Program-made: the position numbers and the translations under genes
Notes under the pieces: model-generated
What the model saw: the letters and a program-made list of their open reading frames with translations, nothing else
Database searches by the model: none
What the model was told of the DNA's origin: nothing
In this document: positions 17,344 to 60,389 of the stretch, one piece after another
How positions within the stretch are numbered: position 1 is the first letter of the stretch
Layout of the letters: every line of letters begins with the position of its first letter
Assembly (NCBI GenBank): GCA_021613535.1
Contig: CP075492.1
Location: 682,001-746,000, forward strand
DNA length: 64,000 bases
Direction of reading: 5' to 3'
Source of the DNA: Adineta vaga
Taxonomy: Eukaryota; Animalia; Rotifera

Positions 17344-17407
17344 CTTGAGGGTAAGGGTGAGGGTGTAATTGGAGATAAGAAATATAAATCCACATTTACG
17401 TTCTTAA
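17344..17407. repeat. Degenerate telomere-repeat palindrome element
   Basis: CTTGAGGGTAAGGGTGAGGGTGT followed by a core and a decayed C-rich arm (ATCCACATTTACGTTCTTAA). Confidence 0.5.
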
Positions 17408-17689
17408 ATCCTGGTCTAATGGTATAGACTGTTTTTTTTTCAATACAATTTTCAGAAGACAACTCATCACTTTTTATAGACTTGTTAATAGCACCCATTT
17501 TGAAATTTCCTCATGCTATAGTCATCTGATCGAACAGATCAGAAGTTGAAAAGTGGAGTATACAAAACTTCTGACATTTATTTAAAAGAATATTAGTAGT
17601 TCTGCAAAAGCCAGTACAGATTGCAAGATCAAGTGTACTATCACGATTGAAATCGCCAATAGCAATCGTAATTGGACTTTCTTATATTG

Positions 17690-18170
17690 ATGATATTATT
17701 TATCTTACACATTTAACGATCGAATATTTCTCTTATGATAATGATTGTCTTGAAATGATATTTAAACCAACACCAAATTTAACAGATTTGAAGATAAATA
17801 TGTTTTATGATAATAATATTATTCGTGCTTCTCTATGGAAAATCTAATCCGTTCATATTTACATCCTTTAAACAATTTTCAATTCGTATTTTCTTACGTT
17901 GGTAATATAGAACACTGCCATATGAAAATGTGTTTTGAAGAATTTGACGAGAAATTTTGGGTCGAAGAACATCATTGGTATACGGAATATATAATATCAA
18001 ACACCTCAGCAAAGATCTATACAATTCCACATATTTCAAACACGTACAGACTTGACAAACATGCTTATATATATTGTAATATATTGTAATTTATCGATAA
18101 ATGATATTGATAAATACCATAAAATAACTAATTTAATTATTGATATTGATACATTAGGGAAGCAAATATA
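17690..18170 (+). pseudogene. Fragment of an F-box/LRR-like family gene, frameshifted, abutting the Helitron 3' end
   Basis: LTHLTI..PNLTDLKI..WENLI..FQF..FW.EEHHWY..IYTIP pattern split across two frames. Confidence 0.55.
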
Positions 18171-18176
18171 TCCTTA

Positions 18177-21100
18177 CTAGCGGAGGTACCCGCTGCAAGT
18201 CCGAATAATGGAATAGTATAAGCTTGAAGGATGAGAATATAATAACCTTAACATAATATATATGTAATGGAACTGTGATGTTATAAATTTAGCTAGGACC
18301 TTCCTACTTTCGGCTTTGATATTCAATATCTGAGATTTGTTTTAGATATTTTTTATTTATTAACTTCTTTCAATTTAAAAGTGGGATAGTTTTTTATTCT
18401 AAAGCCTTCGGGTATACAACGTTTTTCGTTTTGCCATCAGGAGCAAACAGATATAAGTTTTTTCCAGTTCCTACTCTTGAACATACCACGTAAAGTTGGC
18501 CATGAGAAAAGCAAGGAGTTTCTAAATTGACACCAGCAACTTTAAGTGATTGCCCTTAGGACTTATTGATTGACATCGCGAAGGCAAGGCGTACTGGAAA
18601 CTGGAGTCGCCTAAATTGAAATGGCATATCAGAAGGAAGGAGAGGTATTCGCGGTATGCATACATCCTCACCTTTTGCACAACCTGTCATGATCGTTGCT
18701 TCTATTATGTGAGACATTAGAGTTTTGACACATAGTCTTGTACCATTACATAATCTTGGCGCATCCGAATTTCTCAAAAGCATAATAGAAGAGCCAATTT
18801 TCAGATGCAAGTTATGCAGTGGCATTCCAGAAGGTTCAAGTGAATTAAGAAATTCAGTCGGATACTGCACTGCCGCGTCCACATCCGTAACTGTATCAAC
18901 TGACTTATATGATTTCGTTTCTCCAGGAAGTTCTTTCTGAATTTGTAGATTGATGGCATTCACGTTCACGTTTTTGGGAGCCAGAATAGCACGTTCACAT
19001 AACCATTTATGATCCTTGAAATGAGTTTGTATGTTGGGAAACACACTATTCTTGAGTTCTTCAACCGATCCTACGATGTTACAAAAGTTGTCAGGAATAC
19101 TAATGAGTCCATTGACTGGATCTGCTCGTATTTTTCTGTTTCCGATCGCAAGCAGCTGCTCGGCAAACTGACCGGCAGACACGTCACCTTGTAAATGAAC
19201 TCTCATGTTGGTACTGAGTGTTAATGGTTTAACATGTATCCAGAGAGCTGAAGATTTCAAGCAAGCCTTAAGCTCATCAGCCATTGTACCCTTTTGAATA
19301 ACGGGCAATGTTTGCCTAAAATCTCCAGCAAGTAGTACAACTACTCCACCCATAGTTTTTCCATTGCCACGAAGATCTTGTAACGTTTCATTTAAGGCTT
19401 CTAATGAGCACATGTGCGCCATTGTACACTCGTCCCATACAATAAGTTCACATACTTCTAGAATCTTTGCTGCTCCAGTTCCTTTTTGAATACTACAGAC
19501 ATGTTTTTGATTCTGCATAAATTTGAAAGGCAGTTTGAATGTTGAGTGAGCAGTACGATCCCCTTGAAGCAGCATAGCAGCAATGCCTGAAGAAGCCACT
19601 GCAATCGTAATTTTTGATTCTTTGCGAATTTTAGCCAGGAATAAATTAATGACAAATGTCTTTCCAGTTCCACCTGGCGCATCAAGAAATATTATTCCAC
19701 ACGCTTTTTTATTGATCTGACCCAAAATACCGTTGTATGCAGCTCTTTGATCTAGTACTAACAATGGTTCATTTGCTGCTACATAGGCATCGAACTCTTT
19801 CACATCATAACTTGTTTCTCTGAGCATTTCGCTGCTCAATCTATCACCAAGGTTTCGTTGAGGAGTGGGAAGGCCAGATTCCTTAAGCTTTTTGCCACCC
19901 ATCTGTAGAACTTTATCTTCGACAATTATAAGCACTTGATTGAACATATCAGGTGTGTAATTTAAGTTCATTCCAGGATTTCTTCTGCGCGCTTCTCTAA
20001 GAATGTCTTCGGTTAAACTTTCTTTGTACGACTCCCACAATTGCGCTGGATTGGAGGGTCCACAGATGGCTAGTATGAGTGCAAATAGATTTCTCAATCT
20101 TAGTGGTGATTGAGCTGCAGCTGCTTCCGACATTGTGGCATCCCATTGCTGGTCATCTTCCAATAATCCCTATAATTGACATGCCTCACGAAATGTCGCA
20201 CAGACTCGACCATTTACAGTCCGTAGAGCTTCAAATGAAGTAGGACCTCTGACCGTATGAAGTAAGAGTCGTAGAAAAAAGCATTCGAAGTTATTGGGAT
20301 GTACAGTGTAGACACGACCGAAGGCCTCTGATTCCCTTATAGTCGGATGGTCATCCACAGCATTTCCTTGAACACGCCGCTTAAAAAATTTTCCGGATGC
20401 ATCCCATGTGTAATATTTTGGAACATCACAGTACAGCAGCGTTTTGGCGAAGCCATCTTTCTGACATAGTAAGAAAAACGCCGTCAGTGTTGTTCTTGGT
20501 GGTTCTTTAACTTTCTCAAGAACATTATCTTCCGTAAAATAGACCCGTTGACCATTTTCCAAATGTACGGCTAAATGAACTACCGTGGGATATCTTTCAT
20601 GATTTGGAAAATCCAGAATTCGCCAGACTGCCTCGTTACTGCTTATGTATCTCCCCAACTGGTATTGCTTAATTTCATCAACTGCTGTCCCATCCTTGTT
20701 CAGACCAAATACTGCCTGATCACTACCCTTGTTGACATATTTGCAGATATATTTGATCGATTTCACCGAATTGCAATATTCTACATTTATATGAGCTTGA
20801 AAGATCCGGCAGAGTAATAGGCAATATGGCACAACCCATTTATTATCTATTTCAATGTCTTGTTTGGAATTGTTAATTTTCATTTTAATTGTGGCTTTGA
20901 TACCATCATCTTCTGGACTTCGTCTTCTATATAATGGATACCCATCGTCACCGGTTTCTGTATTTTGCAAAAGCTGTCTTGGGTATCCTTTCGTGCACTT
21001 TTTTGTATCTTTGTCCATACAGATAGAATTCGGATTGACGTTACCACAGGGACCATGGAGCATCGTTTTGATGATTATTGCAAAGAGGCGCGGATCTTGT

Positions 21101-23580
21101 TGAGGATCAGGTAGTTCTGCACTGATGACACTATCTATTTGATCCGATTTAATCTTGTTCTTTAGCCATATCAAAATATGTGCATGTGGTAGGCCTCTCT
21201 TTTGCCATTCAATAGAATACATCCAGCATCTTGTTGGACCGAACACATGGCTTTGGCAACAATATTCATCAGTTTTGTGAGCTTTTGTCTGAACACTCTC
21301 GCTATTAAATCATGACGATCGGAAGCATCTTGACCAAACAGCAACTCTTCTTGAATATCTTCCCGCTTAGGATTGCATGTGAATGTCACAAAAAGATCGG
21401 GTCTTCCGTGGTTTCTCGCGTAGGTCATAGCATCTTGTGTATACTCGTGCATGTGGCGTGGGCTTCCGGTAAAAGTGGATGGTAAAATCACTAATTGGCC
21501 AACATTGCTTGCCTTTCCATCATTAGCTATGGCATCCTTCAGATGAATGTATTCATCCACTCTCAATGGTGTCTGATGGTGACGTAGGTAAGATAATCGT
21601 TCACTTTCGATCTTAGCGCACATGTCAACCAAAAACTGTTGAAATAGACGTCGACAGCGTAAGATGTGATTGACAGATCCAAATCGTATCATAATTCTGT
21701 AAGCATAGAAGTCCATGGCCGATACTGTTTTCTTCTCAACAGGCAATCCTGTTTCGGGATCAGTCTGTGCGATGGCGATATCATAACCATCTTCTCCTTC
21801 CCAAAATATCAGAGGGTATTGCAAGGCGTCATAAGCTCTGTGTATCTCAGACACTCTTTTTAACTGACCGTTTTGCTTCTCGAGGACAATATCTCGGTTT
21901 CCAAATGTGTTGTCAACTATCACGGCGGCCACATCATTTGTCGTCGGTGCATTGAAGCGTCGTGCATGCTCTCCGACAGGTGTCTTGTCTGCTCGAATAA
22001 CCACCGTGCGTTGATCCTTAGTCATTGCCTGAAGGGCAGTCTTGAAAGACCGCACATAAGCATTGTTTTCATGAAGCATTTGCTGCAGTTTCTTGACGAT
22101 ATCGGGGAGTAAATCAGGTAGAACTCTGCAACGTTGTTGTACTTCTTTTCTATCGTCACCCATGAAGTAAATTTGAAGAAACTGATGTTCTTGGTCTGGG
22201 AGTGGCAACAGAGATCCTATGCGATGGTATACTTGACCCTGAACTCTAAAGGTTGGATTGAAACCTGGCACAGTCTCTTTCTTTGACGCTCCAAAAGATG
22301 TCATTTGAAAACAGGAATTGTATTTCCTAATGTTATCCAGGAACTTAGTCGATTTAGTCGTTTTTCCTGACATTAGTGATTCCAATGGTTCAGGAGGAGG
22401 TTGAAGTTCATCTAACTTAACCTTACCGTTCGAGCAGCACATGGCCGGTGCTTTCTCCAGGCCACTTCGTCTCTGTTCTGGTGTTTCAGCTGCTCTTGCA
22501 ATTGTTTGTCTCCTACGTTGATCATCAAGTCGATTGCTTGTCTGTTCTGGAGATTCAGCTGCTCTTGCGGCCCCCATTCTTCTTGAAGCTGATGTACTTC
22601 TTCCCAAAGAGGTTCTTTTCTTTACTGGCATTAGGTAATCTTTTTAATCTAAATATGATAAATAGACAGTAATTCAAAAGGGACACATCTCACTACTTAC
22701 CTTTTCAAATGATTTTTGGTATGATGATCGAAGAATATTTGGTAATCTGTAAGTTTATAATGTTTGTAAATACACTGATTTCACACTTACTTGCTTTTCG
22801 ACAATTAAGTTGAGTGATAGAATAGGATAGAATATCTATATCGACTTTAATATGTATTGATAGACAGTAGAAAAAACGATCTGTTTATATAGATGAAAAG
22901 CGCTGGAGATTTCGCAGCACCGTCTTGTATCATGACATGAACATTTCAATGACGATACATGACGTATGAGAAAGAATGTTATACGTCATATCATATACAA
23001 TAATACATTACACAGGGAACAATTCAGATTCATTCAAGAGAGAATGTGCAATAGATAATTATCCAATATAGCCATACTTCATTCGTATATTCCGATCATT
23101 CATATCTCATGTTTTATGAGTCAAGAAAAACAAAGAAAAATGCACAAAAATTTATCGTACATCAGAAAAAATGAATATATCATAGTTATCGATACATAGA
23201 AAGATCAATACACATTATTATTTAAGTATTATAAAGATTATATATTATATTTAGATTATAGATATAGATAAAAGAACCTTTGATTTTCATACATATTGCG
23301 AAAAAAATAGCATTAAATAAACAAAAGCTCACAGAACTTCAATATTTTATGTAATTTTCTGCAAAAATCATGACAATTTCAATTCATTACGACTTCAATG
23401 AGATTTTCTCCAAATAAAATATAAGTTATATAGAAAGAACATATAGATGATTCATGAGCGCTCAGACGGCCTTCGGCCGCCTTCGCTATTAATGTTTCCA
23501 AAATTTTGAGATGCTGAAATCCGATTGGTCGGTTTTATAGGTGACTTGTAGCAAGTGTAGGACTGCTATACATAAGTAGA
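18177..23580 (-). mobile_element. Helitron, near full length, defective
   Basis: 3' end AGCGGGTACCTCCGCTAG|T (CTAG at 18177-18180). Candidate 5' end TCTACTTATGTATA at 23580, preceded by T rather than A, so tentative. Rep-helicase inside. Confidence 0.8.
18394..22631 (-). pseudogene. Helitron Rep-PIF1 helicase (RepHel)
   Basis: FVTFTCNP, EWQKRGLPHAHIL (HUH), KYICKY, GGTGKT, WDE, GDFRQ, FAMSINKS*GQSL, HGQLYV. Frameshift near 21245; in-frame stops at 20170-20172 and 18556-18558. Confidence 0.95.
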
Positions 23581-23615: not shown

Positions 23616-23715
23616 ATCTGAGGGTGTGGGTGTGGGTGAGGGTGGGTGGGTGTAGGTTTACGTAAAGAGATTACGCACCCACTCTCAAACTCACCCACAC
23701 CGACACACTCAAGAT
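23616..23715. repeat. Telomere-repeat palindrome element
   Basis: ATC-TGAGGGTGTGGG arm, core GTAGGTTTACGTAAAGAGATTACGC, C-rich arm ending CTCAAGAT. Confidence 0.85.
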
Positions 23716-23826: not shown

Positions 23827-23909
23827 TGAGGGTGTGGGTGGGTGGGTGTAGGTTTACGTAAAGAGATTACGCACCCACTCTCAAACTCACCCACACCCAC
23901 ACCCACACC
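23827..23909. repeat. Local duplicate of the 23616 palindrome element
   Basis: Same core and same CCACTCTCAAACTCACCC variant arm; preceded by a tandem duplication of GATTTAGTTAACAAACGGT. Confidence 0.85.
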
Positions 23910-24005: not shown

Positions 24006-27000
24006 ATGGCTGACAAATTTATACTATCTCTTCATACTCTACCAATGGAACTTTTTTATCGAATCTTGGATTTTCTTGATCCTTATGACATTCTTATGTC
24101 GGTTGAAGATGTTTGTACACGCTTTAATGCAATATTAAACACATATCATCGTTATCAGGTTAGCTTTTCACATATTTTTTATTGGCGAAATCATATGCAA
24201 ATTTTATCTGCTAACACACATTCAACTACTTATTGTAGAATTATAAGAAATCGATAAGTTTTATTTATCATCTAGATATGTCATTATTTTCAACATCGTA
24301 TACCTCAACCAAAGTTAGTGTCAACTCTTCATGCCTTATGTCGTAATAATGTAATCATTCATTTTCAATTCATCTTACATTTCAATAAAGCTCTTCTTCA
24401 TGTTAGACAATTACCATGTTGACACTTCATTATAACGCATTTAGCAGGCAAATAATACAACAGCTTGCTATTACTTTGAAAATCAATCAGGTAACAACAT
24501 AGTAACTTTATTTTCCTATGATATATGAAATATTCGTACTGATGATAGGCAATTATCACTTTGGATATTCACTACAATAAAATTGAGGGTGGAAATGTAT
24601 GTCAGTTTGCTGATTCTTTAAAGATCAATAAGGTGATATAATATCTCAGCTTAACAACGTTCAACATTTTCATTTCTAATAGACAATTACTACACTGAAG
24701 TTCGTGAATTGCCAATTTAATCTTGAAATAATAAAGCATCTTGCCGATGTTATAAGGGTTAATCAGGTACTGCAATATCTCTTTTTATATATCATATATT
24801 TAGCTATTCTCTTAATAATAGACACTCATTACTCTGAACCTCTCCGATAATAATATTGGTGCCAAAGGTGTTGACCACATTGCCGACGCTCTGAAAATCA
24901 ATAAGGTAATAGAACATCTTCGCTTGTCTGATTTGTATATCATGGTTGTTCATTGATAGACACTCACGACGCTACATCTTTCATGTAATGAACTCGGCAG
25001 TGAAGGAATGCATTGTCTTGCTGATGCTTTGAAAGTCAATCATGTAATATCTTATCTATTTCCTGTCAGATAAGTGACATTCCGATTCATCATAGACAAT
25101 CAAAACATTAAATCTTAGACACAATAAAATTGATGATGAGGGAGCATTCCATCTTGCCGGTGCTCTGATAAAAAATCAAGTAAAATAAGTTTTTAGTTTA
25201 TTTTGCTAGATCTCTAACATCTTTCTTCATGTTAGACACTCTTGAATATCGATCTTCAATACAATAAGATCAAAGATAAAGGCGGGTATCATCTTACTAA
25301 TGCCTTAAAGAAGAATCAGGTAGCATAACATTTGTAACAGTCTGCCATATCTTCAACATTTTTATATAACAAAGACACTGGAGACACTAGGTATTCGAAA
25401 TAATCTGATAGGATGTTCGAAAATCATTGATATTCAGCTGATTTTGGATATTAATCAAGTGAGATAGTTTTTAGATCTATTATAACCTCTTTCATTTACT
25501 TCTTCGTTATAGATTGCTAAGAATAATACATCGAACACTGTGGTGATATATACGTCTTTTTTTATCTTCTATTTTCACAACATAATTATTCTTTATAGAC
25601 AATTGACAAATTAAATCTAGAAAATAGAAATATCAGTGACGATGAAGTTCATTACCTAGCTGATGTCATAAAGCCAAATAATGTGATACAGAAAACAATA
25701 TTGACCTGTTCTTCATTAAATATTTCGTTTATTATAGACAATCAAAACATTTAATCTATGCAATAATCAGATTAGCGATTCAGGAGTTCTCCATATTTGT
25801 CATATTCTCGAAATTTCGAAAGTAAAACAAAAGATTCATTTATCCATTTTATATCTGCATGATTATAGAGTATAAATTCATTGTATCTTCAAATAAACCA
25901 GATCGGTACTACAGGAGCACATTATCTTGCTAATGCTTTAAAGATTAATCAGGTGATAAGGTATTTCTTATTATCTTTCACATCTAGAACATTTTTTTTG
26001 ACTGTAGACTGTCACTACACTGCATCTTGGACAGAATCAAATCAGCAATGAAGGAGCACGTTTTCTTGCTGATGCTCTGAAAACTAATCAGGTACCATAA
26101 TATTCCTTCATATGTATCATATCTTCAATATTTTTCCACATTTTAGACATTGATCATTCTCGATCTGGACCAGAATCGTATTACTGACGAAGGAGCACAT
26201 TACTTTGCTGATGCTCTCATGTTGAATCAGGTACGATTATATCACTCTTATCTATTATACGTACAATATTTGCACTAATAATAGACACTCATGACTCTTA
26301 GTCTTCGATACAATCGCATTAGTGAAGATGAACTATGTTATCTTCAGAGAGTTTCAAAAGGAAATCAAGTGAGTAATGATCTTCTCAAGTTATTTCTCAC
26401 ATTTTGCACATTTTCATTCATGATAGACAATTAGTATATTAACTACGTCGAATGATGAGATGGACCAAAAAGAGCAACAAATTTTTTCAGCTATTTTCAA
26501 GATCAATCATGTTAGATAACTTCTCTATTTCATTATTATATTTTCAAGTCTCTTCTTCATGACAGATCATTAACAAATTTAATCTTCAGAACAATAATAC
26601 AACTAACGCATTAAGTCTTGCAGACATGAATATCGGTAATGAAGAAATATATTACTTTGCTAATGCACTAAACTCCACCGATGTGAGAGAAAACGTATAC
26701 ATATCCATCAGTAGTACAGTTCAATCATTTATTATAGACGATGAATATATTAAATCTTCGAAGCAATCAGACTGACGATGGAGATGTCGATGTCGTTTGT
26801 GACATACTCAAGAACTTGAAGGTCGATCACTTGCCTCTTGATAGCAGTGGGATTGGTAGTGAAACAGCACATCATCTTCCTAAGGTCTTAAAGTTAAATC
26901 GAGTATGCTACGTTTCCTATTTATCTGCTATATCTTTGTTTCTACATCATTGGTCATAGATTATTTCAACATTAGATCTAGGAGAAAACAAGATTACCCA

Positions 27001-28025: not shown

Positions 28026-28048
28026 GAATGTAAGCAAGAACTAATTGT

Positions 28049-28099
28049 ATCTTGAGGGTATGGATGAGTATTCGCACTCTCACCTTCATATCCTAAAAT
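28049..28099. repeat. Degenerate telomere-repeat palindrome element
   Basis: ATCTTGAGGGTATGGATGAGTATTCGCACTCTCACCTTCATATCCTAAAAT, 24 nt after the LRR stop codon. Confidence 0.6.
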
Positions 28100-39226: not shown

Positions 39227-39259
<33 letters not shown>

Positions 39260-41884: not shown

Positions 41885-41941
41885 ATCTTGAGGGTGAGAG
41901 TGTCAGTATGAGTATCATTCCTCCATTCACATTCTCAAGAT
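41885..41941. repeat. Degenerate telomere-repeat palindrome element with both termini intact
   Basis: ATCTTGAGGGTGAGAGTGT..ATGAGTAT..CACATTCTCAAGAT. Confidence 0.75.
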
Positions 41942-48352: not shown

Positions 48353-48516
48353 TGTTAATGATCTGTCCTTTGTTTATTTATATGCAGGTTCGAATAGAAT
48401 AAACAACCGACTAGTACATACACACGAAAGAGAAATGAATGAATATAGGAAAGTAAAGAAAGAACGAAAGAAATAGATAGATATGATCTTAGTGTATGTA
48501 TACACAGATCGTAACA
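48353..48516 (-). repeat. 3' LTR
   Basis: Identical to 54327-54490; preceded on the minus strand by purine tract GGGGGAAG (48517-48524). Confidence 0.97.
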
Positions 48517-49337: not shown

Positions 49338-52300
49338 TTAATTGCCTGAAAGTAATAATGGTCTAATATCACCAACATGAACTTTTGTAATTCTTTTCGT
49401 GTTCATATCTTCGACAGTATAAATTGGATGATGTTTTTCGACGATTATTTTTGGATTAATTGAAAATCGTGGATCTAATTTAGATCTGTTTGTAAATATT
49501 CGAGTTAAAACTGTTGTACCTAATTCATATTCAGGATTTGTACGATTACGATCATAACGAGATTTTGTTTTTTGTTGTTGTTTGAGAACCATTTGTTTAG
49601 CTGTTTGATGATAATATTTCAGATTTTGAACTAATTGTCGAAAATAATCATGAGAATCAGGAAATGCAAATGTTGTTACTGGAGGATCAGTTAGAAGATT
49701 TGCTTGTCGACCAAATGTAAGTTCATATGGAGAGATATTTGTTGTGGTATGTGTACCAGTATTGTATGCAAAAACAATGGGGTGTAAGTACTCATCCCAA
49801 TTATTTGTTTCATTATCTGTTAATTTTGCCAGTTGTGTAACAAATGTACCATTAAATCTTTCGATAGCACCATTAGATTGAGGTCGATATGTTGTTGAAA
49901 AGACATGATGGTAACCAATTAATTTGGATAATGAATGCATCAAATGGTTTTTGAAACATGTACCTTGATCTGAAATAATTGCTTTAGGTACTCCAAATTG
50001 ACAAATATAATATTTGAAAATAGCTTCAGCTGTAACACCGGCAGAACATGTTGGTAAAGCAACAGCAACAATAAATTTGGTGAAATAGTCAGTAAGACAG
50101 AGAACATATTTGTTTTCTTGTGGTGTTGTTGGAAATGGACCACAGAAATCCGTTCCGAGCAGTTGATTAGGACCATCTGGTGGTGGTGTTGGATGAAGAA
50201 AACCAGGAGGTTTTTGTCGAGTTACATTGTAAGCTTGACAAAGAATACAAGATTTAATATGGTCAATAACTGTTTGTTTCATTTCGGGCCACCAAAACTG
50301 TTGTTTAAGTTTTTCTAATGTTCGTCGAATTGCAAAATGACCACCAATAAGAGGATTATTGTGATAAGACATGAGTAATTGTTTGATCATAGATGATGGA
50401 ATGTAAACTAATTTACGTTTAGTCTTTCCATGTGGAACAGATACTAATTTAAATAAAATTTCATCTTGATAAACAAAAGACATGTTTGAATTTTCTTTTA
50501 AATCATTAATAATCTTCTGAATTTGTTTATCATTAGATTGATATTCCTTTAATTTGGTTATATCAAAAACATTTTCGTCATCATTCGAATAATTGAGATC
50601 ATTTGTAGGTAATGTTGAAGATGATATATGTGGTAATGGAGATGTTGTTGTTGATGATGATGCTACAGGTTGTGCTATTGCTTTGGATTTTGATCGAGTA
50701 ACTACTGCACCAAGTAATTGAATAGAAGAGGATTTATCTTTGGTAAAACCTAATCCATAATCATGATCAATTAATTCATCATCAGCTGCAATAGGATGTC
50801 GTGAGAGATAATCTGGTAAACAATTGTATTTTCCTTTAACATGTATAATCTTTTGAATATTAAATTCTTGAAGTAAGATCGAGATTTTTTCAACACGTCT
50901 ATTTGAAATTTTCTTATCCATCATATGACAAATAGGACAATTATCCGTATAAATAATTATATCACGACCAAGTAAAAAAGACTTCATTCGAGTAAAACAT
51001 TTGAAAATTGCTAATGCTTCAAGTTCAATAGGAATATATCGCTTTTGAGTTGAATTCAGTAATTCTGAATGATAATAAAGTATTTTCTTTTCATTATTAA
51101 TCTCTTGGTACAGTACGCCACCTAAACCAACTTGAGAAGCATCTGTAGCTAGAAATACTGGCTGTGTATCATCAGGAAAATTTAAGAAAAGTGGAGATGA
51201 TGTTAACATATTTTTCAAATCATAAAAAGACTTGGATTGTTCAGATCCCCATTTAAATTTGTGACGATTAGATTTTGATAGATTAGTTACTGCATGAATT
51301 GGTGCAGCAATTGATGCAAATGCAGGAATAAATTTTCTGTACCATGATAATAAACCAATAAAACGATTTGCTTGAGCTAATGATTTGGGTTCTGGTAATG
51401 CAGTAATTGAATTAATTCGATGAAGTAATGGAGTAAAAGTTGTTGATGAAACTACATGACCTAAATATTCAATTTGTTCTTTTGCTAATTCACATTTTGC
51501 AGGATTTAATGTTAAATTATGTAGTTTTAAAGCATTTAAAACTTTTTCAATATGAACTAAATGTTCATCATAACTGCGACTAAAGACGATAATATCATCC
51601 AAATAGATTAAAGAGAAATCGATACATGAAGATAAAACCTTGCTCATAGTACGTTGAAAAGTTGGTGGTGAATTTCGGAGACCTTGAGGTAAAACTGACC
51701 ATTCAAACAATCCAAATGGTGTAATGAAAGCTGTTTTAGCACGATCACCTGGATTAATTGGAAGTTGCCAAAAGCCAGATCTTAAGTCAAATTTAGAAAA
51801 ATAAGAGTATCCAGCACCTAATGATTGAAGCGTGATTTCCATATTTGGTAAAGGATAATTGTCCTTAATCGTAACAGAATTGAGTTTTTTGTAGTCGATA
51901 ACTAATCTCCAACTTTGATTTTTCTTTTTCACTAAAAGTGCTGGAGCTGCATATGATGATTGTGAAATACGTATAAGTCCGGCATCAAGTAATTTATCAA
52001 TAATTATTTTTAATTCAGCATTTATTGTTGGATTACCAGGATATGGTTTTGAAACAGGTGGTGTATGAGGAACTGTTTCAATAAAATGTGAAATTTCTGT
52101 TTGTGCAATTGTATAATTTGTTGTATCAAACGTAGATTCATATTTAAATAATAACGATTGAAGTTTATCATATTGAACTTGGTGAGAAATATGATTGATT
52201 AATTTAAAAATAGATTGTTGAATAACATGAGCTAATGGTGTTACAAGAGTATTCAATTGTTGTATTGGTGGTGATTTTATAAAATTTGATAATTGTAATG

Positions 52301-52742
52301 AATGATGAGTTGATGATAAATCAGGATCCATTGATATCATACTCTTTTGATTATTAAAATTAATAGTAATCAATTTTTTCTTGGGATAAATTTCTAAATC
52401 ATATTTCAACAAATAATCCATACCTAATATAATATCTGTACATAAATTTGTGGTAATAAAGGCTGGAATGGATGTTATCAAATCACCTATTGAAATCTTC
52501 AAATGAACAATACCATTTACTTTTATCGAATTTAATCCATCAGCCATAAAAAATTGTTGAGGAGTAATATGAGAATAATATAACTGATCAAGATCTTTTA
52601 AACAAGTATGATTAATAAAACAATGTTGTGCACCAGTATCAATTAAAAGTTTCATTTGTTTATTATTAACATATGTGGTTATAAAAATTAAAGGAGTAGA
52701 TGGATATTGAAGTGGATTATTGAAGTCAAGACCATCTATCAT
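49338..52742 (-). CDS. pol: Pol polyprotein
   Basis: LIDTGA protease, LPQGL and YLDD RT, TDAS RNase H, HHCC + DDE integrase; frame is open from ~52845, first ATG at 52742. Confidence 0.97.
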   Translation of the reverse strand: MIDGLDFNNPLQYPSTPLIFITTYVNNKQMKLLIDTGAQHCFINHTCLKDLDQLYYSHITPQQFFMADGLNSIKVNGIVHLKISIGDLITSIPAFITTNLCTDIILGMDYLLKYDLEIYPKKKLITINFNNQKSMISMDPDLSSTHHSLQLSNFIKSPPIQQLNTLVTPLAHVIQQSIFKLINHISHQVQYDKLQSLLFKYESTFDTTNYTIAQTEISHFIETVPHTPPVSKPYPGNPTINAELKIIIDKLLDAGLIRISQSSYAAPALLVKKKNQSWRLVIDYKKLNSVTIKDNYPLPNMEITLQSLGAGYSYFSKFDLRSGFWQLPINPGDRAKTAFITPFGLFEWSVLPQGLRNSPPTFQRTMSKVLSSCIDFSLIYLDDIIVFSRSYDEHLVHIEKVLNALKLHNLTLNPAKCELAKEQIEYLGHVVSSTTFTPLLHRINSITALPEPKSLAQANRFIGLLSWYRKFIPAFASIAAPIHAVTNLSKSNRHKFKWGSEQSKSFYDLKNMLTSSPLFLNFPDDTQPVFLATDASQVGLGGVLYQEINNEKKILYYHSELLNSTQKRYIPIELEALAIFKCFTRMKSFLLGRDIIIYTDNCPICHMMDKKISNRRVEKISILLQEFNIQKIIHVKGKYNCLPDYLSRHPIAADDELIDHDYGLGFTKDKSSSIQLLGAVVTRSKSKAIAQPVASSSTTTSPLPHISSSTLPTNDLNYSNDDENVFDITKLKEYQSNDKQIQKIINDLKENSNMSFVYQDEILFKLVSVPHGKTKRKLVYIPSSMIKQLLMSYHNNPLIGGHFAIRRTLEKLKQQFWWPEMKQTVIDHIKSCILCQAYNVTRQKPPGFLHPTPPPDGPNQLLGTDFCGPFPTTPQENKYVLCLTDYFTKFIVAVALPTCSAGVTAEAIFKYYICQFGVPKAIISDQGTCFKNHLMHSLSKLIGYHHVFSTTYRPQSNGAIERFNGTFVTQLAKLTDNETNNWDEYLHPIVFAYNTGTHTTTNISPYELTFGRQANLLTDPPVTTFAFPDSHDYFRQLVQNLKYYHQTAKQMVLKQQQKTKSRYDRNRTNPEYELGTTVLTRIFTNRSKLDPRFSINPKIIVEKHHPIYTVEDMNTKRITKVHVGDIRPLLLSGN

Positions 52743-54265
52743 TGACTTCGATTCTCGAAATGGTGACAATTGCGTGCTATATGAGTTGTAGAACCACAAT
52801 TGAAACAACGTTGAAATGATTGGCGGCGTCGTTGAAAACGATTATTTTGATGTGTATTATTATAATATGATGATGAAAAATTTTGTGGTGGTTTAACAGA
52901 ATCTGCTTGACGAGATGAATTAAAAGATGAGGATTTCGAAATTTGATTCAAAAATCGATGTTGATTATTATCATGAGAAGAATAATTAGTATTATCATTG
53001 TGATAGTGATTATCAGCATTGGAATTTCGACGAGAATCATTATAATCATTTTCTCGTGTTGAACCATTTGTATTTGAATAAGAAAAAGAAGTTGATGATG
53101 TTAATTCATCATTATTAATAGAATTGCAGGAAAATGTATTATTCAATGCTGTCAGTTCTTCAGCTATTTTTGCTCGTACTAAAAATGCTTCTGTATTTGT
53201 AGGATAATTTCTTCGAGTTTCAGTAGATAGAGATGGACGAAGACCATTCATAAGATATCGAACTTTTGTTGATTCATTCATTTGTGGATCAGCTTGTTTC
53301 ATTAATTTAATCATTTCCATATAATATTGTGTTGCTGATTGATGAACTGTTTGATGATATTGCTTGAGTTTCTCAAATGCTAGATCACGTTGTAAATTCG
53401 ATGTAAATGATTGTTTAATTTCATCAACGAATATTGACCAGCAAGTAAATTTGTGTTTGTTCTGCTTAAACCACTGTAATGCATCACCTTTGAGACAAAT
53501 ATGAATCAAATTTAATTTATCGGCGTTATTTAAATGCATCGTATTGAATTGTTGTTCAATCTCATCAATCCATGTAATAACATTTTCTTTACCAGCAGCA
53601 AATTTCAATGGATCTTTGATAAATTTATCGACTAATGCTTTAGCAATTGTTGTAGACAAAATTGAATGAGATAAATGATTATCACGTGAATGAAGTGGTG
53701 TATCTTGATCAGCAGCTGCTACTGCTTTATCACCTAAAAGATTTATTAAATCACCATGTATAGATTCATTAACAACAACAGGTGGACGTAATAAAAAAGA
53801 TTGATTTGATTGTTTCATATTAGCATTGACATCAGGACAAGAGGTTTGTTCGAGATTGAAATATTCATGAGCAAATAATTGACATAAATGAGCATATGAT
53901 TGAATTTTGTCTTGATTCAACGTATACCAAATGAAAACATCATCTTCGAAAAAATAAGGAATGATTTTCAATCGTTCATCAAATGTTAAATTAAATTCCG
54001 AAAATTTTGAATGAATATGTCTAAACCATTGACGAGCATCATCTTGACCATTAAATAATTTCACATCATGACGAAGTACTTCTAATAATGTTGGTTTTTC
54101 ATCACGTTCTACTGCAGAACATTCATCAGCTGTAGCTGGTTTATTATCATTATTTGTATTTGTTAATGATAATGAATTTGGATTAGATTCATGTGTAACT
54201 TGTGCAATAGGTTGAGGATCAGTATCATTATTTGATTCACCTTGATTACGTGTATGAACTGTCAT
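52739..54265 (-). CDS. gag: Gag with two capsid-like domains and a CCHC knuckle
   Basis: 508-aa ORF; FNG..DA..W / FAAGKENV..W repeats; CFNCGSTTHIARNC. Confidence 0.93.
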   Translation of the reverse strand: MTVHTRNQGESNNDTDPQPIAQVTHESNPNSLSLTNTNNDNKPATADECSAVERDEKPTLLEVLRHDVKLFNGQDDARQWFRHIHSKFSEFNLTFDERLKIIPYFFEDDVFIWYTLNQDKIQSYAHLCQLFAHEYFNLEQTSCPDVNANMKQSNQSFLLRPPVVVNESIHGDLINLLGDKAVAAADQDTPLHSRDNHLSHSILSTTIAKALVDKFIKDPLKFAAGKENVITWIDEIEQQFNTMHLNNADKLNLIHICLKGDALQWFKQNKHKFTCWSIFVDEIKQSFTSNLQRDLAFEKLKQYHQTVHQSATQYYMEMIKLMKQADPQMNESTKVRYLMNGLRPSLSTETRRNYPTNTEAFLVRAKIAEELTALNNTFSCNSINNDELTSSTSFSYSNTNGSTRENDYNDSRRNSNADNHYHNDNTNYSSHDNNQHRFLNQISKSSSFNSSRQADSVKPPQNFSSSYYNNTHQNNRFQRRRQSFQRCFNCGSTTHIARNCHHFENRSQ

Positions 54266-54311
54266 AATTTAATGTGAAGTAAAAAAAAATAATCGATTGT
54301 TTATAAATTTA

Positions 54312-54325
54312 CTGCAGGGTCGCCA
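54312..54325 (-). promoter_or_regulatory. Primer binding site
   Basis: TGGCGACCCTGCAG 1 nt inside the 5' LTR, complementary to a tRNA 3' CCA end; tRNA identity (possibly Arg) not established. Confidence 0.8.
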
Positions 54326-54326
54326 C

Positions 54327-54490
54327 TGTTAATGATCTGTCCTTTGTTTATTTATATGCAGGTTCGAATAGAATAAACAACCGACTAGTACATACACACG
54401 AAAGAGAAATGAATGAATATAGGAAAGTAAAGAAAGAACGAAAGAAATAGATAGATATGATCTTAGTGTATGTATACACAGATCGTAACA
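54327..54490 (-). repeat. 5' LTR
   Basis: Identical to 48353-48516. Confidence 0.97.
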
Positions 54491-54866
54491 ATAAGAGATG
54501 ATGATAACACCCACCCACACCCTTCCACATTTTAGCTCCGAAGGAGCTCCGCTAACAAGCTTTTATCTATACAAATTGAAGAAACTAAACTCAGAGTCGT
54601 ACTCTTCGACGACGATTACATTTCGGTCAAAATTATTCAAAAGGAATCCTTTTTATTTCCGCCTTATTTTTCGACCAATCAGTGAAGCGCGAACACACAA
54701 GCAAGCAAGCAAAGCAAACAGACAGTTTATGTTTATAAGACTCTCCTCTACGAGAAAAAAATTCATGTGATCAAATGTAATAAAATATTTCATAAGAAAT
54801 GACGTATGAATTCATTTCTGTATGAAGTTTTAAAGTTTCAATGTCATTCACTTCATCGAATCGAAG

Positions 54867-56907: not shown

Positions 56908-56964
56908 TGGGTGTGGGTGTGGGTATTACATCTATCTCACACCCACACCCACACCCACACCCTC
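56908..56964. repeat. Telomere-repeat palindrome element fused to a truncated LRR exon
   Basis: TGGGTGTGGGTGTGGGT-ATTACATCTATCTC-(ACACCC)4 TC; the minus strand joins CAAGGAG|GGTGTGGG. Confidence 0.88.
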
Positions 56965-59900
56965 CTTGATGAGCAATGCGATTGTACGAAAGATTTATTG
57001 TGGTGAGTGTCTGAAGAAGGGAAAGAAGATGAATGTATAATTCTGTGAAGAGGATATGAATATTACCCTATTCGTTCGCAAGGCAACACCTATATGCTGT
57101 GCTCTTTGATGGCCGATTTGATTCTTCGTAAGATTTAGTGTGGTGAGCGTCTGTAGATGAGATAGAGGATGAATCTGTGAGTTCTGTGAAGAGGATATGA
57201 AAATTACCCTGTTCGTTCGCAGCACATCACTTATATGCTGTGCTCCTTCATCGTCGATTTGATTCTCCCTGAGATCTAGTGTAGTGAGTGTCTGAGGAAG
57301 GGAGAGAAGATGAATGCATAAATCCTGTGAAGAGGGAAGGAAGATTACCGTGTTGGTTCGGAGTGCATCACCAATATGTTGTGCTCCTTCATGGCCGATA
57401 CGATCGTAATGGATATTTATTGTGGTGAGTGTCTGTATGCAAATGTATTGAGACTTCAGGTTTATGTTTATGAAGTAGATGTGTTATTTCAAAATAAGTC
57501 TGGTGGAGATCGGGGAATCGATTTGGATATCCTTTGTTTGGGCACATTAGGGAAAGATATGAATTGTTGTTGGACGGATTGTTACTGAGTCAAGTTCGGA
57601 ATATTGGATAGGTAGGGTCACGATACTATTAGAGAATGGTGGCTGGTTTACGGAAGTAGTTTTAGTCTCCGAAATAATTCGATCGGAACCGCAGTAGACA
57701 GTTTATTGTGAATAGTGGTTATGAACGATTCGTGTTTTCTCAGTTTGGAGACTTTCTTGGGAGTTTCTGGTTTGTTCACAATTGGCGGAGCTATAGTTGC
57801 GTATATGGGGAAGTGATTTTTGCTGTTGTTTTATTTTTTCATCGAAAAGATTTTTTTTGATGTTTAAGGTTTTACCTAAGATACTCAAGATAATGATAGT
57901 ATATACTTGGTAATGATTTTCTCTTGTTATTTTTATAGTTAATTAGAGCGAGAGAATGTTGAGTTGTATCTAATTATAGAACATTGCAATTTGTTTTGAT
58001 TCGGTCAGTTTCAAAAAAAGTTGTCGCACTGTTTGAGAGATTCTTTAAAGGCATGTGTTTGAAATGGGAAAGGTGTTTTATAATTGTACCATTCCATTCG
58101 TATCCTTCTTATGATCGCGTATTAGATAAAATGCATATTCTATGGACGTGGATAGAAAAAAACAGAACGAAATAATAGTTGTTTTGTAATAACATCAGTC
58201 AATGTTGTGTCTGACTGACTCGTCAGAATTGCGTCTAAATTTTGAAATTATTTCGATTCTTCTTTGAGAAAACTCAGTAAGTAAGATATTAGTAGGCTCA
58301 TGTGTAGTAGAACACCTACGGAAAAAAACTTCAGTCAATACCGCGGTTTATGACGGTTTCTAGCTTGAAGGTTCGAAACGATTATTGTGAACCGCAAAAG
58401 TCAGACTTTCTATTAGGTTTTTAAAAACCACTACATAGAGCGATATTCTGAAACCGTGGTGCTTACCGATTTTCAAAAAAACCTAATTCATCGTGGTGGT
58501 GAATTATTTCTGTCATCTATCCTGCTATTCTTGACTTTCCATGTTAACCACTAGTCTACGATACTAACCCGTTGATCTTACACCGCGGTAAACTCTTCTA
58601 ATATCACTATCTATTTTATATTCATCTGCTTCATGTTAGATTTGAACTCCTTACCGTGCAATTGTCGTTCACTAATTCCATTGAACCATCTGGTCATATT
58701 TATACTAAGATTAGATATGATAGCCTATCTGATTATTAATGAAAAATATTTTCATATCCAAATATACATATCATATACAGATAAAATCTTAATAACTCCA
58801 TGAATATTTCCTATTAATTTGTAATATCTCTAAAACTTTATTCAAATTTCCTCTGACAATTGTATTTATAGTATATTTTGTATAGGATTTATTGGATTGT
58901 ATTTATCCTTTATAGTTAGGACCATTGATATATAAACACACTTTATTGTGATAAGATTATACCGATGGTGAAAGGTAGAGATTTATCAGAATTTGTAGAT
59001 ATTTAACCGCGGTTTTGTGCGGTATTGAAACGTCTAACGATCGAGTAGGATATTGTAATTCAGTAAATAGATGTGAATCTCAATATTAAAACGCATGCAA
59101 ATTATTAAAAAAAGTGAAAACATCTCAGTTTTATTGACTCACGAAACTAGTTTATGCCTATTTCTGTATCTGATAATCTACAAACCTGTGAACATTATCA
59201 GAAGTATAGTCATCTGAATTAATTTTGACTAAGCTATTCGATATGTTCATATTTTTTTTAATCTGCTAAATCCTTATATAAAGTTGACGTTGATCAACAT
59301 TTGTTCTTGATCTGGTTTATTTTCTCTTTACCTTCAACTTTTCAAATTATAATTGTTCTAAATTAAACTACATTATATGCTGTCATAAAAAGCAAAAAAT
59401 GAATTTGAATATTACCGATTTTTGGCATTTAATAAAAATATTCTGTTTTGATTTAAAAATCACACGTTTCTACACTGTAAAAAGATGGAGAATAACCAAC
59501 GATAAAAGCCTTTATTAAAGAACTCCGTTTTTATTATACTTGACGAAGATATAAATCCATTTTGGATTTATGAAGCACTTAAAGAAACAGAAAAATGATT
59601 TATTATACATTGCAAATCGATAAATCTTTATTTTTCCAACGTAGTTTTTTCGAACTTTTCATGTTGTAAGATGATGATAAATTTTGTTTTAATCGATGAG
59701 AAAATGTTTTTATATCATACTGTGACTTTTAAGTAGTAAGTTTTAGTGATATAACCTTATTAGAAAAATAACGTTAGAAAATCCAGTCATACTTTGAAAA
59801 TAAATTGATTCAAATAATCATACTTTTCGAGATAAAGCACAGACCACGATTTCTAACAGGGATTTCGCGAATAAAAATACCGTAAAAGATGAAGGTTGTA

Positions 59901-60166
59901 TGGTACCACAACTAGTTACCAGCATACGGTGTTTTTTGAAACCGCAGCATCTACTAAAATATTTTCCCGTGGGTACACAAGAGAATAGCCCAAGCACTTA
60001 GCAAACTTACCCGATATCGATGATAAGTATTAAGGATTTGATTGAAACGGCGACAAACATTTTGCATTGAACAAAACAGTGTAAAATCACTCTGATGATC
60101 CATAATTCGATAAACGAGTTCGATAGGTAATGTTAAAAATGTGTACATGTTCTTTTCACATTCCAT
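56962..60166 (-). pseudogene. 3'-truncated F-box-like + LRR gene (paralog of 24006-28025)
   Basis: Exon 1 60166-60011 (FLTLPIELVYRIMD..YHRYR|GTAAG); 84-nt LRR exons 57432-57349, 57291-57208, 57150-57067; fourth LRR exon from 57010 broken at ~56962. Confidence 0.85.
58315..59973. mobile_element. Old non-autonomous DNA element within intron 1 of the LRR gene
   Basis: Weak TIR CCTACGGAAAAAAACTTCAGT / ACTAAAATATTTTCCCGTGGG; recurrent ACCG(CGGT) motifs. Confidence 0.5.
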
Positions 60167-60365
60167 ACAAAAGATTATTGAAAATACAAGGTTTTGAATA
60201 TATTTTCTTTGTTATGAGAAGGAGTTTTCGATACTGAAATATTTATCTTTTTATTATCGACAAAGAAAGAAGTCTGACGATTTCAACAATAGCGAATGGA
60301 TGGTTTAGGTAGAAAGATGGCGTTAATGCATATGTTGAGTAGAGTTTAGTCTATTGTGTGTGATC

Positions 60366-60389
60366 GTGGGTGTAACCACACGCTCAAGA
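60366..60389. repeat. Minimal remnant of telomere-repeat palindrome element
   Basis: GTGGGTGTAACCACACGCTCAAGA, ~200 nt upstream of the minus-strand LRR gene start. Confidence 0.5.

Follow-up and report, generated by a model that had tools for sequence, protein, structure and literature searches.

Palindromes of telomere-like repeats in a subtelomere of Adineta vaga and their relation to retroelement tails

Introduction

The Athena and Terminon elements are summarised in PMC6431247 and PMC8557442 (after Gladyshev & Arkhipova 2007 and Arkhipova et al. 2017) as endonuclease-lacking Penelope-like elements of bdelloids. Their 3' end consists of a hammerhead ribozyme followed by reverse-complement telomeric repeats (PMC6431247, PMC8557442), which in Terminon tails take the form of TCACCC/ACACCC stretches (PMC6431247). 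Elements of this type reportedly use exposed 3' ends as primers, either at telomeres or at double-strand breaks (PMC6431247, PMC8557442, PMC3846280), and head-to-head inverted repeats are a known product of Penelope-like elements (PMC3846280). In bdelloids, the published telomere unit is TGTGGG (PMC8494291), in agreement with one of the units named in an initial, sequence-only reading of the DNA described here.

This DNA, referred to below as the window, is a stretch of 64,000 nucleotides from Adineta vaga (contig CP075492.1, positions 682,001 to 746,000 of the forward strand, assembly GCA_021613535.1). The sequence-only reading had listed 11 copies of a palindrome in which a G-rich arm of telomere-like units is followed by a short core and a C-rich arm, and all 11 can be located in the sequence. 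We describe the anatomy and distribution of these palindromes and then consider how they may have arisen. The genome searched comprises 100.8 Mb in 6 contigs, to which all genome-wide figures refer.

Palindromes and Insertions in the Window

The features are given in window coordinates, with the strand where one is assigned.

12486-14453: hAT gene, whose ends do not coincide with palindromes
17342-17400: decayed copy with TTCTTGAGGG at its end and a short G arm, the C arm being nearly gone
18556-22631: Helitron (RepHel genes), lying between the 17342 and 23616 copies, with its ends elsewhere
23616-23715: complete palindrome with the variant end ATCTGAGGG, G arm, 30-nt core, C arm and exact CTCAAGAT
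23827-23907: second copy, sharing its core with 23616 (local duplication) and having the ATCT end on neither side
28049-28093: decayed copy with an exact ATCTTGAG end
34277-34496: largest copy, with exact ATCTTGAG, G arm of ~75 nt, core TACAAGTATAGCCTG and C arm of ~126 nt; right end lost
35398-35453: decayed copy with a ATCTTTGAG end, G arm, core and the start of a C arm that is cut by a foldback repeat
35454-35907: foldback repeat of ~470 bp with inverted arms and many genomic copies, on both strands
35908-35939: last part of the 35398 copy, with the remaining C arm and the decayed right end CCCTCAATAC
40366-40533: long-armed copy with core TTAAGAGTATAGTCTGA; left end lost, right end truncated to CTCAAG
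41885-41941: decayed copy of 57 bp in which both 8-bp ends are exact
48332-48352: left half of a split copy, with an ATCG variant end, a short G arm and the first part of the core; the ATAAG duplication forms its right edge
48353-54490, minus strand: young Ty3/gypsy-type LTR retrotransposon with LTRs of 164 bp that are 100% identical and a 5-bp duplication, ATAAG
54491-54526: right half of the split copy, with the ATAAG duplication, the rest of the core and the C arm
56908-56964: copy without ATCT ends, with core ATTACATCTATCTC
60362-60389: tiny remnant GATCGTGGGTGTAACCACACGCTCAAGA, a plausible but weak candidate for a palindrome remnant

Clear palindromes begin at 23616, 23827, 34277, 40366, 41885 and 56908, and decayed copies at 17342, 28049, 35398 and 60362. 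The segments 48332-48352 and 54491-54526 constitute a single palindrome, split by the LTR retrotransposon. Two palindromes of the window bear transposon insertions. The LTR retrotransposon is a secondary insertion in the core of the split copy, and the foldback repeat, also a secondary insertion, interrupts the 35398 copy in its C arm and stands outside the palindrome family.

Two other mobile elements of the window were considered as possible parents. The palindromes were rejected as Helitron ends, as other Helitron copies lose homology at ~23562, around 50 bp before the palindrome, and as hAT ends, given that the CTCAAGAT at 14930, close to the hAT gene, has no telomere-like arm and is therefore a chance match.

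Anatomy and Genome-Wide Distribution

The left end ATCTTGAG is exact at 28049, 34277 and 41885 and variant at 23616, 17342 and 35398, while the right end CTCAAGAT is exact at 23708 and 41934 and truncated at 40528-40533. The 8-bp end, which the sequence-only reading described as shared where intact, is thus absent from some window copies, but across the genome it lies far above chance: ATCTTGAGGGTG occurs 581 + 571 = 1,152 times, against 2 + 0 in a reversed control, and 45 elements carry both 12-mers in perfect form at a distance of 10-400 nt. The first telomere-like unit, directly after ATCT, is TGAGGG in every case, which leaves (C)ATCT as the only truly non-telomeric bases of the end.

The order of the arms is equally constrained. 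Per strand, 771 G-to-C pairs are found genome-wide against 5 C-to-G pairs, and within 264 kb the figures are 27 and 1; pairs in direct orientation, G-G or C-C, hardly occur. With a constant end and a fixed, non-random G-then-C order, the palindromes are not plain microsatellites but form a structured, dispersed, hairpin-capable family, as had been claimed from the sequence alone. Single strands of intact palindromes are predicted to form strong hairpins, with z-scores of -7 to -10; the DNA hairpin of the 23616 copy, for instance, has a predicted energy of -32 kcal/mol and a z-score of -7.1. In Rfam searches, the palindromes returned only sub-threshold matches to generic microRNA hairpins.

The cores fall into families that recur at many loci. 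The ATTACATCTATCTC core of the 56908 copy belongs to the same family as those at L018:7178 and L016:4994, and a longer form of this family resembles a hammerhead-adjacent leader. Copies with the same core have arms that are unequal in length and in their pattern of variant units, one example being 9 nt against 53 nt, although two copies at L003, 3.4 kb apart, have nearly the same arms. The palindromes vary from pristine to strongly degraded and give no indication of being conserved. They sit between genes or gene fragments and at the edges of duplicated segments, and among the matches listed their positions cluster toward contig ends. The palindromes of this A. vaga subtelomere are real and very numerous.

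Relation to Hammerhead-Linked Tails

The same parts are found in a second arrangement. A hammerhead, a leader, a C arm and then CCCTCAAGAT occur in this order at 22 places, against 0 in the control, so that the ribozyme is followed by the same C arm and CTCAAGAT tail that close a palindrome. Under a strict hammerhead pattern, CTGATGAG...CGAAA, the combination of hammerhead, leader and C arm is present at ~22 distinct loci, many of them within tens of kb of contig ends. The segment L006:5128-5173 is a full-model match to Rfam Hammerhead_1 (22.4 bits, E 0.0015). The ribozyme belongs to the parent-type units, and the palindromes themselves are without a hammerhead. A hammerhead lies within 150 nt of only ~2% of ATCTTGAG termini, and the link is one of shared parts rather than of adjacency. 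At curated thresholds, the only Rfam hit across the window and 15 + 20 loci was one tRNA in a metagenome contig. To the right of 56964, a TTGATGAG...CGAAAG motif with a 140-bp tandem repeat looked hammerhead-like by eye and was set aside, having no Rfam hammerhead match.

Several loci show further arrangements. 5'-truncated, Terminon-like tails are capped by palindromes at L006:4987-5220 and L018:7178-7995, three ATCTTGAG-G starts lie in tandem at L009:4827-4905, half-units are found joined to antisense hammerheads, and the same end is present on hammerhead-linked tails that are not palindromic. No Athena reverse transcriptase gene was found within the genome stretches examined. The connection of the palindromes to the retroelement tail is fairly firm.

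The correspondence between the palindrome core and the leader, the segment between the ribozyme cut and the C-rich tract, is suggestive only. At C3:17650, the ribozyme cut gives way to the leader ATGGCGGGTATTAC, and the core at L018:7178, ATGCGAGTATTAC..., has a similar start. The cores of the window copies at 40366 and 34277 are similar to the L006 leader GCTATACTC, and the core family TTGGTTATTA is preceded by a hammerhead-like motif at C1:1064048. When 48 cores were scored together against two local leaders, the result was weak, with p 0.045 relative to random genomic segments and 0.006 relative to shuffled cores. When two core families were searched for individually, each yielded a single hammerhead-linked parent, and one core family retains a few bases from before the presumed ribozyme cut.

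Flanks and Edges

No direct repeat of 1-10 bp flanks the ~20 intact copies, and moving the assumed palindrome boundary likewise revealed no target-site duplication; the AT within the terminus is its own complement and cannot be scored as one. L019 and L020 share a ATTTTTTC-like flank, which is taken as coincidence or paralogy. Conservation in the flanks fades gradually outward without a sharp stop, and the consensus before ATC is (A)xC in this genome and ACT in rotifer-like contigs of a moss metagenome.

Other repeat families start or stop at, or within ~12 bp of, several palindrome edges. Ends of unrelated families abut palindromes at window position 40534, L007:5005 and L006:4363. A 3.5-kb paralogous segment (24516-28036) stops 12 bp short of the 28049 copy, and a 1.33-kb repeat family begins at 40534, the base adjoining the 40366-40533 palindrome, and terminates 24 bp before the 41885 copy. 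At five junctions with repeated flanks, either the families on the two sides differ or a family ends at the edge. Some of these edge-to-edge contacts could reflect targeting of the palindromes rather than their origin, since transposons also insert into palindromes.

Neither an empty site nor a de novo event was seen. Public reads yielded no palindrome-free allele but say little on the matter: contigs of the reference strain contain each of the three L003 palindromes, and three runs with the same species label nearly lack the region. In A. ricciae, the choline kinase orthologue (77% protein identity) lies on a contig of which 21 kb are free of palindromes; the genes around it are different, however, which disqualifies the locus as a true empty site. 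L001 and L007 were rejected as an empty and filled pair, as their shared 210-bp repeat ends at the palindrome and does not continue. In the L013 tandem array, a palindrome and 51 + 25 extra nt lie between two repeat units, with a similar stretch of ~25 bp on each side; at ~70% identity, this similarity is indistinguishable from the array's own internal repetition.

Origin of the Palindromes

We propose that the palindromes are by-products of Athena/Terminon tails that were copied onto both ends of a break and joined head-to-head, a reading to which we give an even chance of being correct. The parent tail, read on the sense strand, would comprise a hammerhead ribozyme, a leader of 13-25 nt, C-rich reverse-complement telomeric repeats and CTCAAGAT. 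It would give rise to an RNA with the 3' end ...CCCUCAAGAU, often just the short piece left by ribozyme cleavage, which the element's reverse transcriptase would copy from its extreme 3' end onto any free DNA 3' end, yielding ATCTTGAG, then G-rich repeats and then the antisense leader. If both ends were extended in this manner, whether those of a double-strand break or those of two loose DNA pieces, head-to-head joining of the two extended ends would give the order of flank, ATCTTGAG, G arm, a single leader that forms the core, C arm, CTCAAGAT and flank. The RNA terminus at AGAU, the two-ended priming and the joining are steps that we infer. Each palindrome would then be a dead-on-arrival repair patch that does not move itself, and the core families would represent different parent retroelement families. 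Unequal arm lengths may arise because the two sides are made separately and the repeats slip, and the tandem starts at L009 would be expected from serial abortive initiations. Among the possibilities raised by the sequence-only reading, a recurrent break-healing cassette comes closest to the evidence.

The sequence-only reading also raised the possibility of a MITE, a class II or foldback transposon with telomere-like terminal inverted repeats that is moved by a transposase through cut-and-paste. Such an origin would suit short, numerous elements with inverted arms of sub-repeats, common terminal bases, matching inverted ends ATCTTGAG...CTCAAGAT and several subfamilies by internal sequence, and there is mention of foldback-like DNA elements in A. 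vaga (PMC2861651). However, the ~20 intact copies lack target-site duplications, the conservation of the flanks decays without a sharp end, the families differ where both flanks are repeated, and the terminal motif is common to retroelement tails beside hammerheads. A longer copy with a transposase between matching ends, for which the earlier reading had proposed a search, was not found within 264 kb, and we consider the MITE very improbable. A self-propagating hairpin retroelement, in contrast, would need no target duplication: the whole palindrome would be transcribed and trimmed to the base of the stable hairpin, and an Athena-type reverse transcriptase would copy it in one piece, or else a short cDNA would snap back and prime itself, before insertion at breaks. 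Consistent with this are sharp ends exactly where complementarity stops, core families common to different loci, such as the L003 pair, and the proposal of self-priming, with palindromes at inverted junctions, for Penelope elements (PMC3846280). Yet same-core copies often differ strongly in the length and pattern of their arms, the tandem ATCTTGAG half-units of L009 and those joined to antisense hammerheads fit poorly with unit copying, and the same end is carried by non-palindromic tails, all of which makes this origin appear doubtful.

A retroelement template could also be dispensed with altogether, if telomerase added repeats to both ends of a break and the new telomeres fused head-to-head with a small amount of filler. 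Two chromosome ends joined head-to-head would have the G-then-C order, independent arm lengths and no target duplication, and neotelomere signatures have been reported at breakpoints in A. vaga lines (PMC13564844). The fixed end would be explicable only if the flank of the telomerase RNA template read CUCAAGAU; pure addition to arbitrary ends leaves the constant ATCT and TGAGGG start at 1,152 sites unexplained. Moreover, the cores recur in families rather than as random filler, and the same C arm and CTCAAGAT directly follow hammerhead ribozymes. Interstitial tracts made by telomerase are recognised by pure repeats, an arbitrary start and a single orientation, whereas inverted pairs, shared cores and a fixed start are found here, and we hold telomerase healing and fusion to be distinctly improbable. 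Finally, whatever their origin, the palindromes may have been retained by the host as boundary or regulatory elements, for example G-quadruplex or hairpin insulators, terminators or heterochromatin seeds. Their strong predicted hairpins and their location between genes or gene fragments and at the edges of duplicated segments would accord with such a role, but the spectrum from pristine to heavily decayed copies, their absence from the 21 kb of A. ricciae and the transposon insertions that they suffer argue against it, and host selection seems extremely unlikely.

Implications

If the reading of the palindromes as joined tail copies is true, each marks a site where a retroelement reverse transcriptase tagged two ends that were subsequently joined, and together they would provide a countable and datable record of end healing in an animal famed for surviving the shattering of its genome, as well as a means of chaining gene fragments, transposons and perhaps foreign DNA into subtelomeres. 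A broader version, which we regard as speculative and rather unlikely, is that bdelloids routinely patch broken or loose ends with short ribozyme-released Athena/Terminon RNA, copied onto both ends by a telomerase-related reverse transcriptase as tags that enable joining, and that the same process stitches foreign and transposon DNA into subtelomeres. Were this so, the hundreds of palindromes would be a fossil record of RNA-templated end-joining, and tolerance of breaks would be linked to the high load of horizontally acquired genes. If instead the palindromes move as units, they would represent an unusual non-autonomous element without target duplication. The palindromes inflate the counts of interstitial telomeric repeats that are used as a subtelomere marker, and their strong hairpins and G-rich structures may hamper assembly.

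Comparison with Known Systems

Mobile DNA whose inverted ends contain telomere repeats is found in ciliates. In TBE1 and Tel-1, the repeats are outermost and run C-then-G, a transposase is encoded, and insertion duplicates 3 bp of target; all of these features are absent from the palindromes. Foldback elements and MITEs share with the palindromes their small size, many copies, strong hairpins and inverted arms of short sub-repeats; the palindromes differ in having no target duplication, no transposase partner found within 264 kb, no sharp outer boundary and an end motif in common with retroelement tails. The interstitial telomeric sequences of mammals (PMC7215372) are likewise short telomere-type tracts at repaired double-strand breaks without target duplication, but they have a single orientation and are ascribed to telomerase, whereas the palindromes pair two inverted tracts, with a fixed non-telomeric end and a putatively templated core. 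Where pLTRs of canonical Penelope elements are inverted head-to-head (PMC3846280), with a palindrome at the junction of the terminal parts, self-priming or template jumping by a reverse transcriptase of the same clade is held responsible; these structures, however, flank full or truncated endonuclease-bearing elements, often with target duplications of 8-10 bp, and are without telomeric repeats.

The Athena/Terminon tails have C-rich repeats, (ACACCC)n or (TCACCC)n, after the hammerhead, as do the parent-type units described here. They also attach to free 3' ends without an endonuclease or a target duplication, are subtelomeric, and include 5'-truncated copies bordered by short telomeric stretches, with host genes between units. 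The palindromes differ from them in having neither ribozyme nor coding sequence, in consisting of two inverted tail fragments that face each other across one leader, and in number, with hundreds of palindromes (1,152 termini and 771 G-to-C matches per strand) against ~22 hammerhead-linked tails; their fixed CTCAAGAT after the C-rich tract is unmentioned in the Athena/Terminon literature searched. The sequence-only reading knew of no description of such an element, and here a distinction is needed. The building block, a hammerhead with reverse-complement telomeric repeats, is known and published (PMC6431247, PMC8557442), whereas a description of the palindromic form or of the fixed ATCTTGAG end was not found in the literature searched.

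Genomic setting of the palindromes

The Adineta vaga genome encompasses 100.8 Mb on six contigs at 32% G+C, and the window represents bases 682,001-746,000 of contig 3. In the chromosome-level assembly of this species, (TGTGGG)n is found at the chromosome ends and the subtelomeres are loaded with transposons and foreign genes (PMC8494291). Mobile DNA is abundant in the window, which harbors a hAT transposase, a Helitron Rep/helicase and a Ty3/gypsy-type retrotransposon, and also a choline kinase gene. A row of 23 N at 4071-4093 may be an assembly gap.

The sequence-only reading listed about 11 palindromes, each with a G-rich telomere-like arm, a short core, a C-rich arm and, where intact, fixed ATCT-type outer ends. 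All are present, and the described range from pristine to decayed is borne out. The hairpins of the intact copies are computed to be very stable when folded. Bare coordinates below refer to the window.

Features of the window
1285-1742 and 9949-10336: foldback-type self-complementary repeats, about 400-470 bp, only inverted self-matches seen
12486-14453, + strand: hAT transposase gene, 655-aa frame; domains: BED zinc finger (weak), hAT dimerisation
18556-22631, - strand: Helitron, Helitron_like_N and PIF1 helicase domains over three reading frames
23616, 23827, 34277, 40366, 41885, 56908: six clear palindromes
17342, 28049, 35398, 60362: four decayed palindromes
35454-35907: foldback-type self-complementary repeat, about 400-470 bp, many genomic copies, both strands matched
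35908-35939: remaining C arm and decayed end of the 35398 copy
48332-48352 and 54491-54526: single palindrome split in two by a retrotransposon
48353-54490, - strand: very young Ty3/gypsy-type LTR retrotransposon, two 164-bp LTRs, 100% identical

Long reading frames for gag and pol, of 508 and 1,156 aa, are present in the retrotransposon, which is bordered on both sides by a 5-bp ATAAG duplication and has inserted into a telomere-repeat palindrome, within its core. The C arm of the 35398 copy is similarly broken, by the multi-copy 470-bp foldback repeat. A tandem repeat of about 140-bp period (56962-57437) starts directly at the border of the 56908 palindrome. Its first unit has a motif that looks hammerhead-like by eye (TTGATGAG...CGAAAG) and has no Rfam hammerhead match.

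Ends, arm order and distribution

Close inspection covered 264 kb, made up of the 64-kb window and 200 kb of the genome from elsewhere; counts from pattern searches take in overlapping registers. The terminus reported as shared is enriched genome-wide, with ATCTTGAGGGTG found 581 + 571 times against 2 + 0 for the reversed control. Both 12-mers are perfect and spaced by less than 400 nt in 45 elements genome-wide, mostly of 48-120 bp and toward contig ends. The order of the arms, G then C, is non-random, outnumbering the reverse by 27 to 1 in the 264 kb and by 771 to 5 per strand genome-wide, and arms paired directly as G-G or C-C hardly occur in the 264 kb. The fixed end is real, as claimed; its supposed 8-bp non-telomeric terminus shrinks to (C)ATCT, since ATCT always continues with a TGAGGG unit.

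An exact 16-mer scan of metagenome contigs, in which chance matches are plentiful in G+C-rich bacterial contigs, finds full palindromes on about 40 contigs of low G+C, most of which belong to a single set of related samples; we take these contigs to be other bdelloids. The family therefore occurs beyond this strain. The conserved end is longer in these contigs, where ACT precedes ATCTTGAGGG; in this genome (A)xC precedes ATC with a conservation of about 50%. Conservation of the flank weakens gradually outward, without a sharp transposon-type boundary.

Flanking DNA

Long stretches around the palindromes were compared with the whole genome. In every case of repeated flanks the two sides belong to different families, and homology ends at or near the palindrome. 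The Helitron ends some 50 bp away from the 23616 copy; its 5' region has roughly 15 genomic copies (about 71% identity), which all end near 23562. Further boundaries, including some at other loci of the genome (L prefixes), are as follows.

Repeats and tracts bordering palindromes
40534: start of a 1.33-kb family, immediately following the CTCAAG that ends the 40366 copy; one end is common to its copies, the other varies
Other end of the 1.33-kb family: 24 bp short of the 41885 copy
3.5-kb paralogous segment: stops 12 bp short of the 28049 copy
Another repeat: stops 11 bp short of the 40366 copy
L007:4796-5005: 210-bp interspersed repeat with sharp bounds, SINE- or MITE-like, more than 25 genomic copies of 89-94% identity; stops 1 nt before the palindrome at L007:5007
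L006:4363: palindrome start, where one arm of an 800-bp foldback family stops
L001:4970-4983, L008:5072-5095, L009:5199-5260: other G-rich tracts (GGGGATGGGAT, GGTGGGGATGGGGCGAGGGG and GGGGGACGGGGGACGGGGA) just beyond the ATCTTGAG end of three palindromes

Because transposons also insert into palindromes, part of this edge-to-edge pattern may come from the targeting of fragile hairpins. Long reading frames enter a palindrome and stop within it at L005:4914-5828 (- strand, a TPR-repeat protein) and L017:4028-5002 (+ strand, a 325-aa frame), a pattern consistent with fragments of genes that were broken there. About 65 kb from L006, a 95-98% identical segmental duplication (G000:C1:17465146-17466525) bears two of the L006 palindromes, so passive spread by duplication takes place too; it is without the approximately 750-bp repeat present at L006:2997-3807. 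No palindrome-free allele of three L003 palindromes is found in contigs of the sequenced strain, and three runs with the same species label barely cover the region.

Relation to Athena/Terminon tails

Athena/Terminon elements are endonuclease-lacking Penelope-like retroelements of bdelloid rotifers. Their published 3' end has a hammerhead fold followed by (ACACCC)n or (TCACCC)n, used for attachment to G-rich overhangs, and their copies are 5'-truncated, carry short telomeric stretches at their borders and are chained with host genes in between (PMC6431247, PMC8557442).

At L006 the palindrome at 4987-5107 is followed by a short spacer and a type I hammerhead ribozyme, a full-model match to Rfam Hammerhead_1 (22.4 bits, E 0.0015) that falls under the curated cut-off, as is expected of the minimal Penelope-type motif. 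Past the ribozyme come a 19-nt leader, the stretch between the ribozyme cut and the C-rich tract, and a second, decayed C-rich tract. The order hammerhead, leader, C arm and CCCTCAAGAT is found 22 times genome-wide and never in the control. A strict hammerhead pattern (CTGATGAG...CGAAA) gives about 22 distinct hammerhead-leader-C-arm loci, several of them no farther than tens of kb from contig ends. Only about five of the 22 keep CTCAAGAT, as expected if only priming on a non-telomeric end leads to copying of the final 8 nt.

Many cores, read on the pyrimidine-rich strand, resemble these leaders, whose first bases are ATGG, GTGG or TTGG and which include GCTAT..CTC or CTGCT motifs. The core at L018:7178 (ATGCGAGTATTACATCTATC) matches best: it opens in the same way as the leader ATGGCGGGTATTAC in the C3:17650 unit, and the G arm is joined to the first leader base; the 56908 core (ATTACATCTATCTC) and L016:4994 are shorter members of the same core family. 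The L006 leader GCTATACTC is similar to the cores of copies 40366 and 34277, and the TTGGTTATTA core family has 14 of 15 bases in common with the sequence after a hammerhead-like motif at C1:1064048. In pattern searches specific to two core families, each family gave only one hammerhead-linked parent. A pooled core score test against two local leaders gives p 0.045 with random segments and 0.006 with shuffles. These matches are suggestive of the cores being leader sequence.

Other structures also bear on the origin of the palindromes. At both L006 and L018 a 5'-truncated Terminon-like tail is capped directly by a palindrome, with the core in the sense of the tail. Three successive units in the same direction, each with a (near-)ATCTTGAG start and a few G repeats, are found at L009:4827-4905, as serial abortive starts would produce. 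At C6:3846765 a ATCTTGAG-G arm leads first into antisense leader and then into antisense hammerhead, and a C arm and CTCAAGAT close the structure 340 bp on, which shows a continuum between long and minimal forms. Copies with the same core differ in arm length and variant pattern.

Origin of the palindromes

The most likely route, inferred from sequence in all of its four steps, is two-ended tail-copying followed by joining. An RNA ending in ...CCCUCAAGAU, often just the piece from the ribozyme cut to that end, would be copied by a Penelope-like reverse transcriptase priming on any free DNA 3' end and beginning at the last base of the RNA. Extension would add ATCTTGAG, then G repeats, then antisense leader. 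The two sides of a break, or two loose fragments, would have their ends extended likewise, and the extended ends would then be annealed or ligated to each other, with one leader lost as a flap. The product would read ATCTTGAG, G arm, then leader, then C arm, with CTCAAGAT last. Such a process would account for a fixed outer end beside arbitrary flanks, with conservation fading beyond it, and for the fixed G-then-C order without target duplication. It would also account for the single asymmetric core, the independent arms and the half-units, and for the location at the ends of other mobile DNA and of truncated retroelement copies.

A hairpin retroelement copied as one unit, or as snap-back cDNA, explains the sharp ends and core families, but less well the tandem half-units and unequal arms. 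Telomerase healing followed by fusion explains arm order and why the arms are unequal; it leaves the constant ATCT-TGAGGG start, the recurrence of cores and the connection to hammerheads unexplained, and would be revived by a telomerase RNA with CUCAAGAU beside its template.

The MITE suggested by the sequence-only reading fails, since target-site duplications are absent at about 20 intact copies, the 264 kb yielded no transposase-bearing long copy, and the flanks are discontinuous. The window hAT gene has no telomere-like ends and is unconnected with the palindromes, which on present evidence appear not to be a cut-and-paste transposon. A host-selected boundary role may exist as a secondary use, although the copies are free to decay, and no palindromes are present around the choline kinase orthologue in A. 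ricciae.

Comparison with known systems

Already known are the Athena/Terminon tail, free-end priming, the short telomeric stretches that accompany truncated copies, and the head-to-head repeats of Penelope. No mention was found in the literature searched of a class of minimal palindromes dispersed in hundreds of copies, of a constant CTCAAGAT that follows the C-rich tract, or of palindromes as a record of two-ended joining; the primary Athena/Terminon descriptions, outside the scope of that search, may have them. According to the literature, Athena/Terminon elements prime on 3' ends that are exposed at telomeres or double-strand breaks, and canonical Penelope elements make inverted terminal repeats, ascribed to self-priming (PMC3846280). 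The hammerhead-leader-C-arm units of this genome show the published hammerhead and C-rich telomeric arrangement of the Athena/Terminon 3' end, and the head-to-head form of the palindromes parallels the Penelope inverted terminal repeats.
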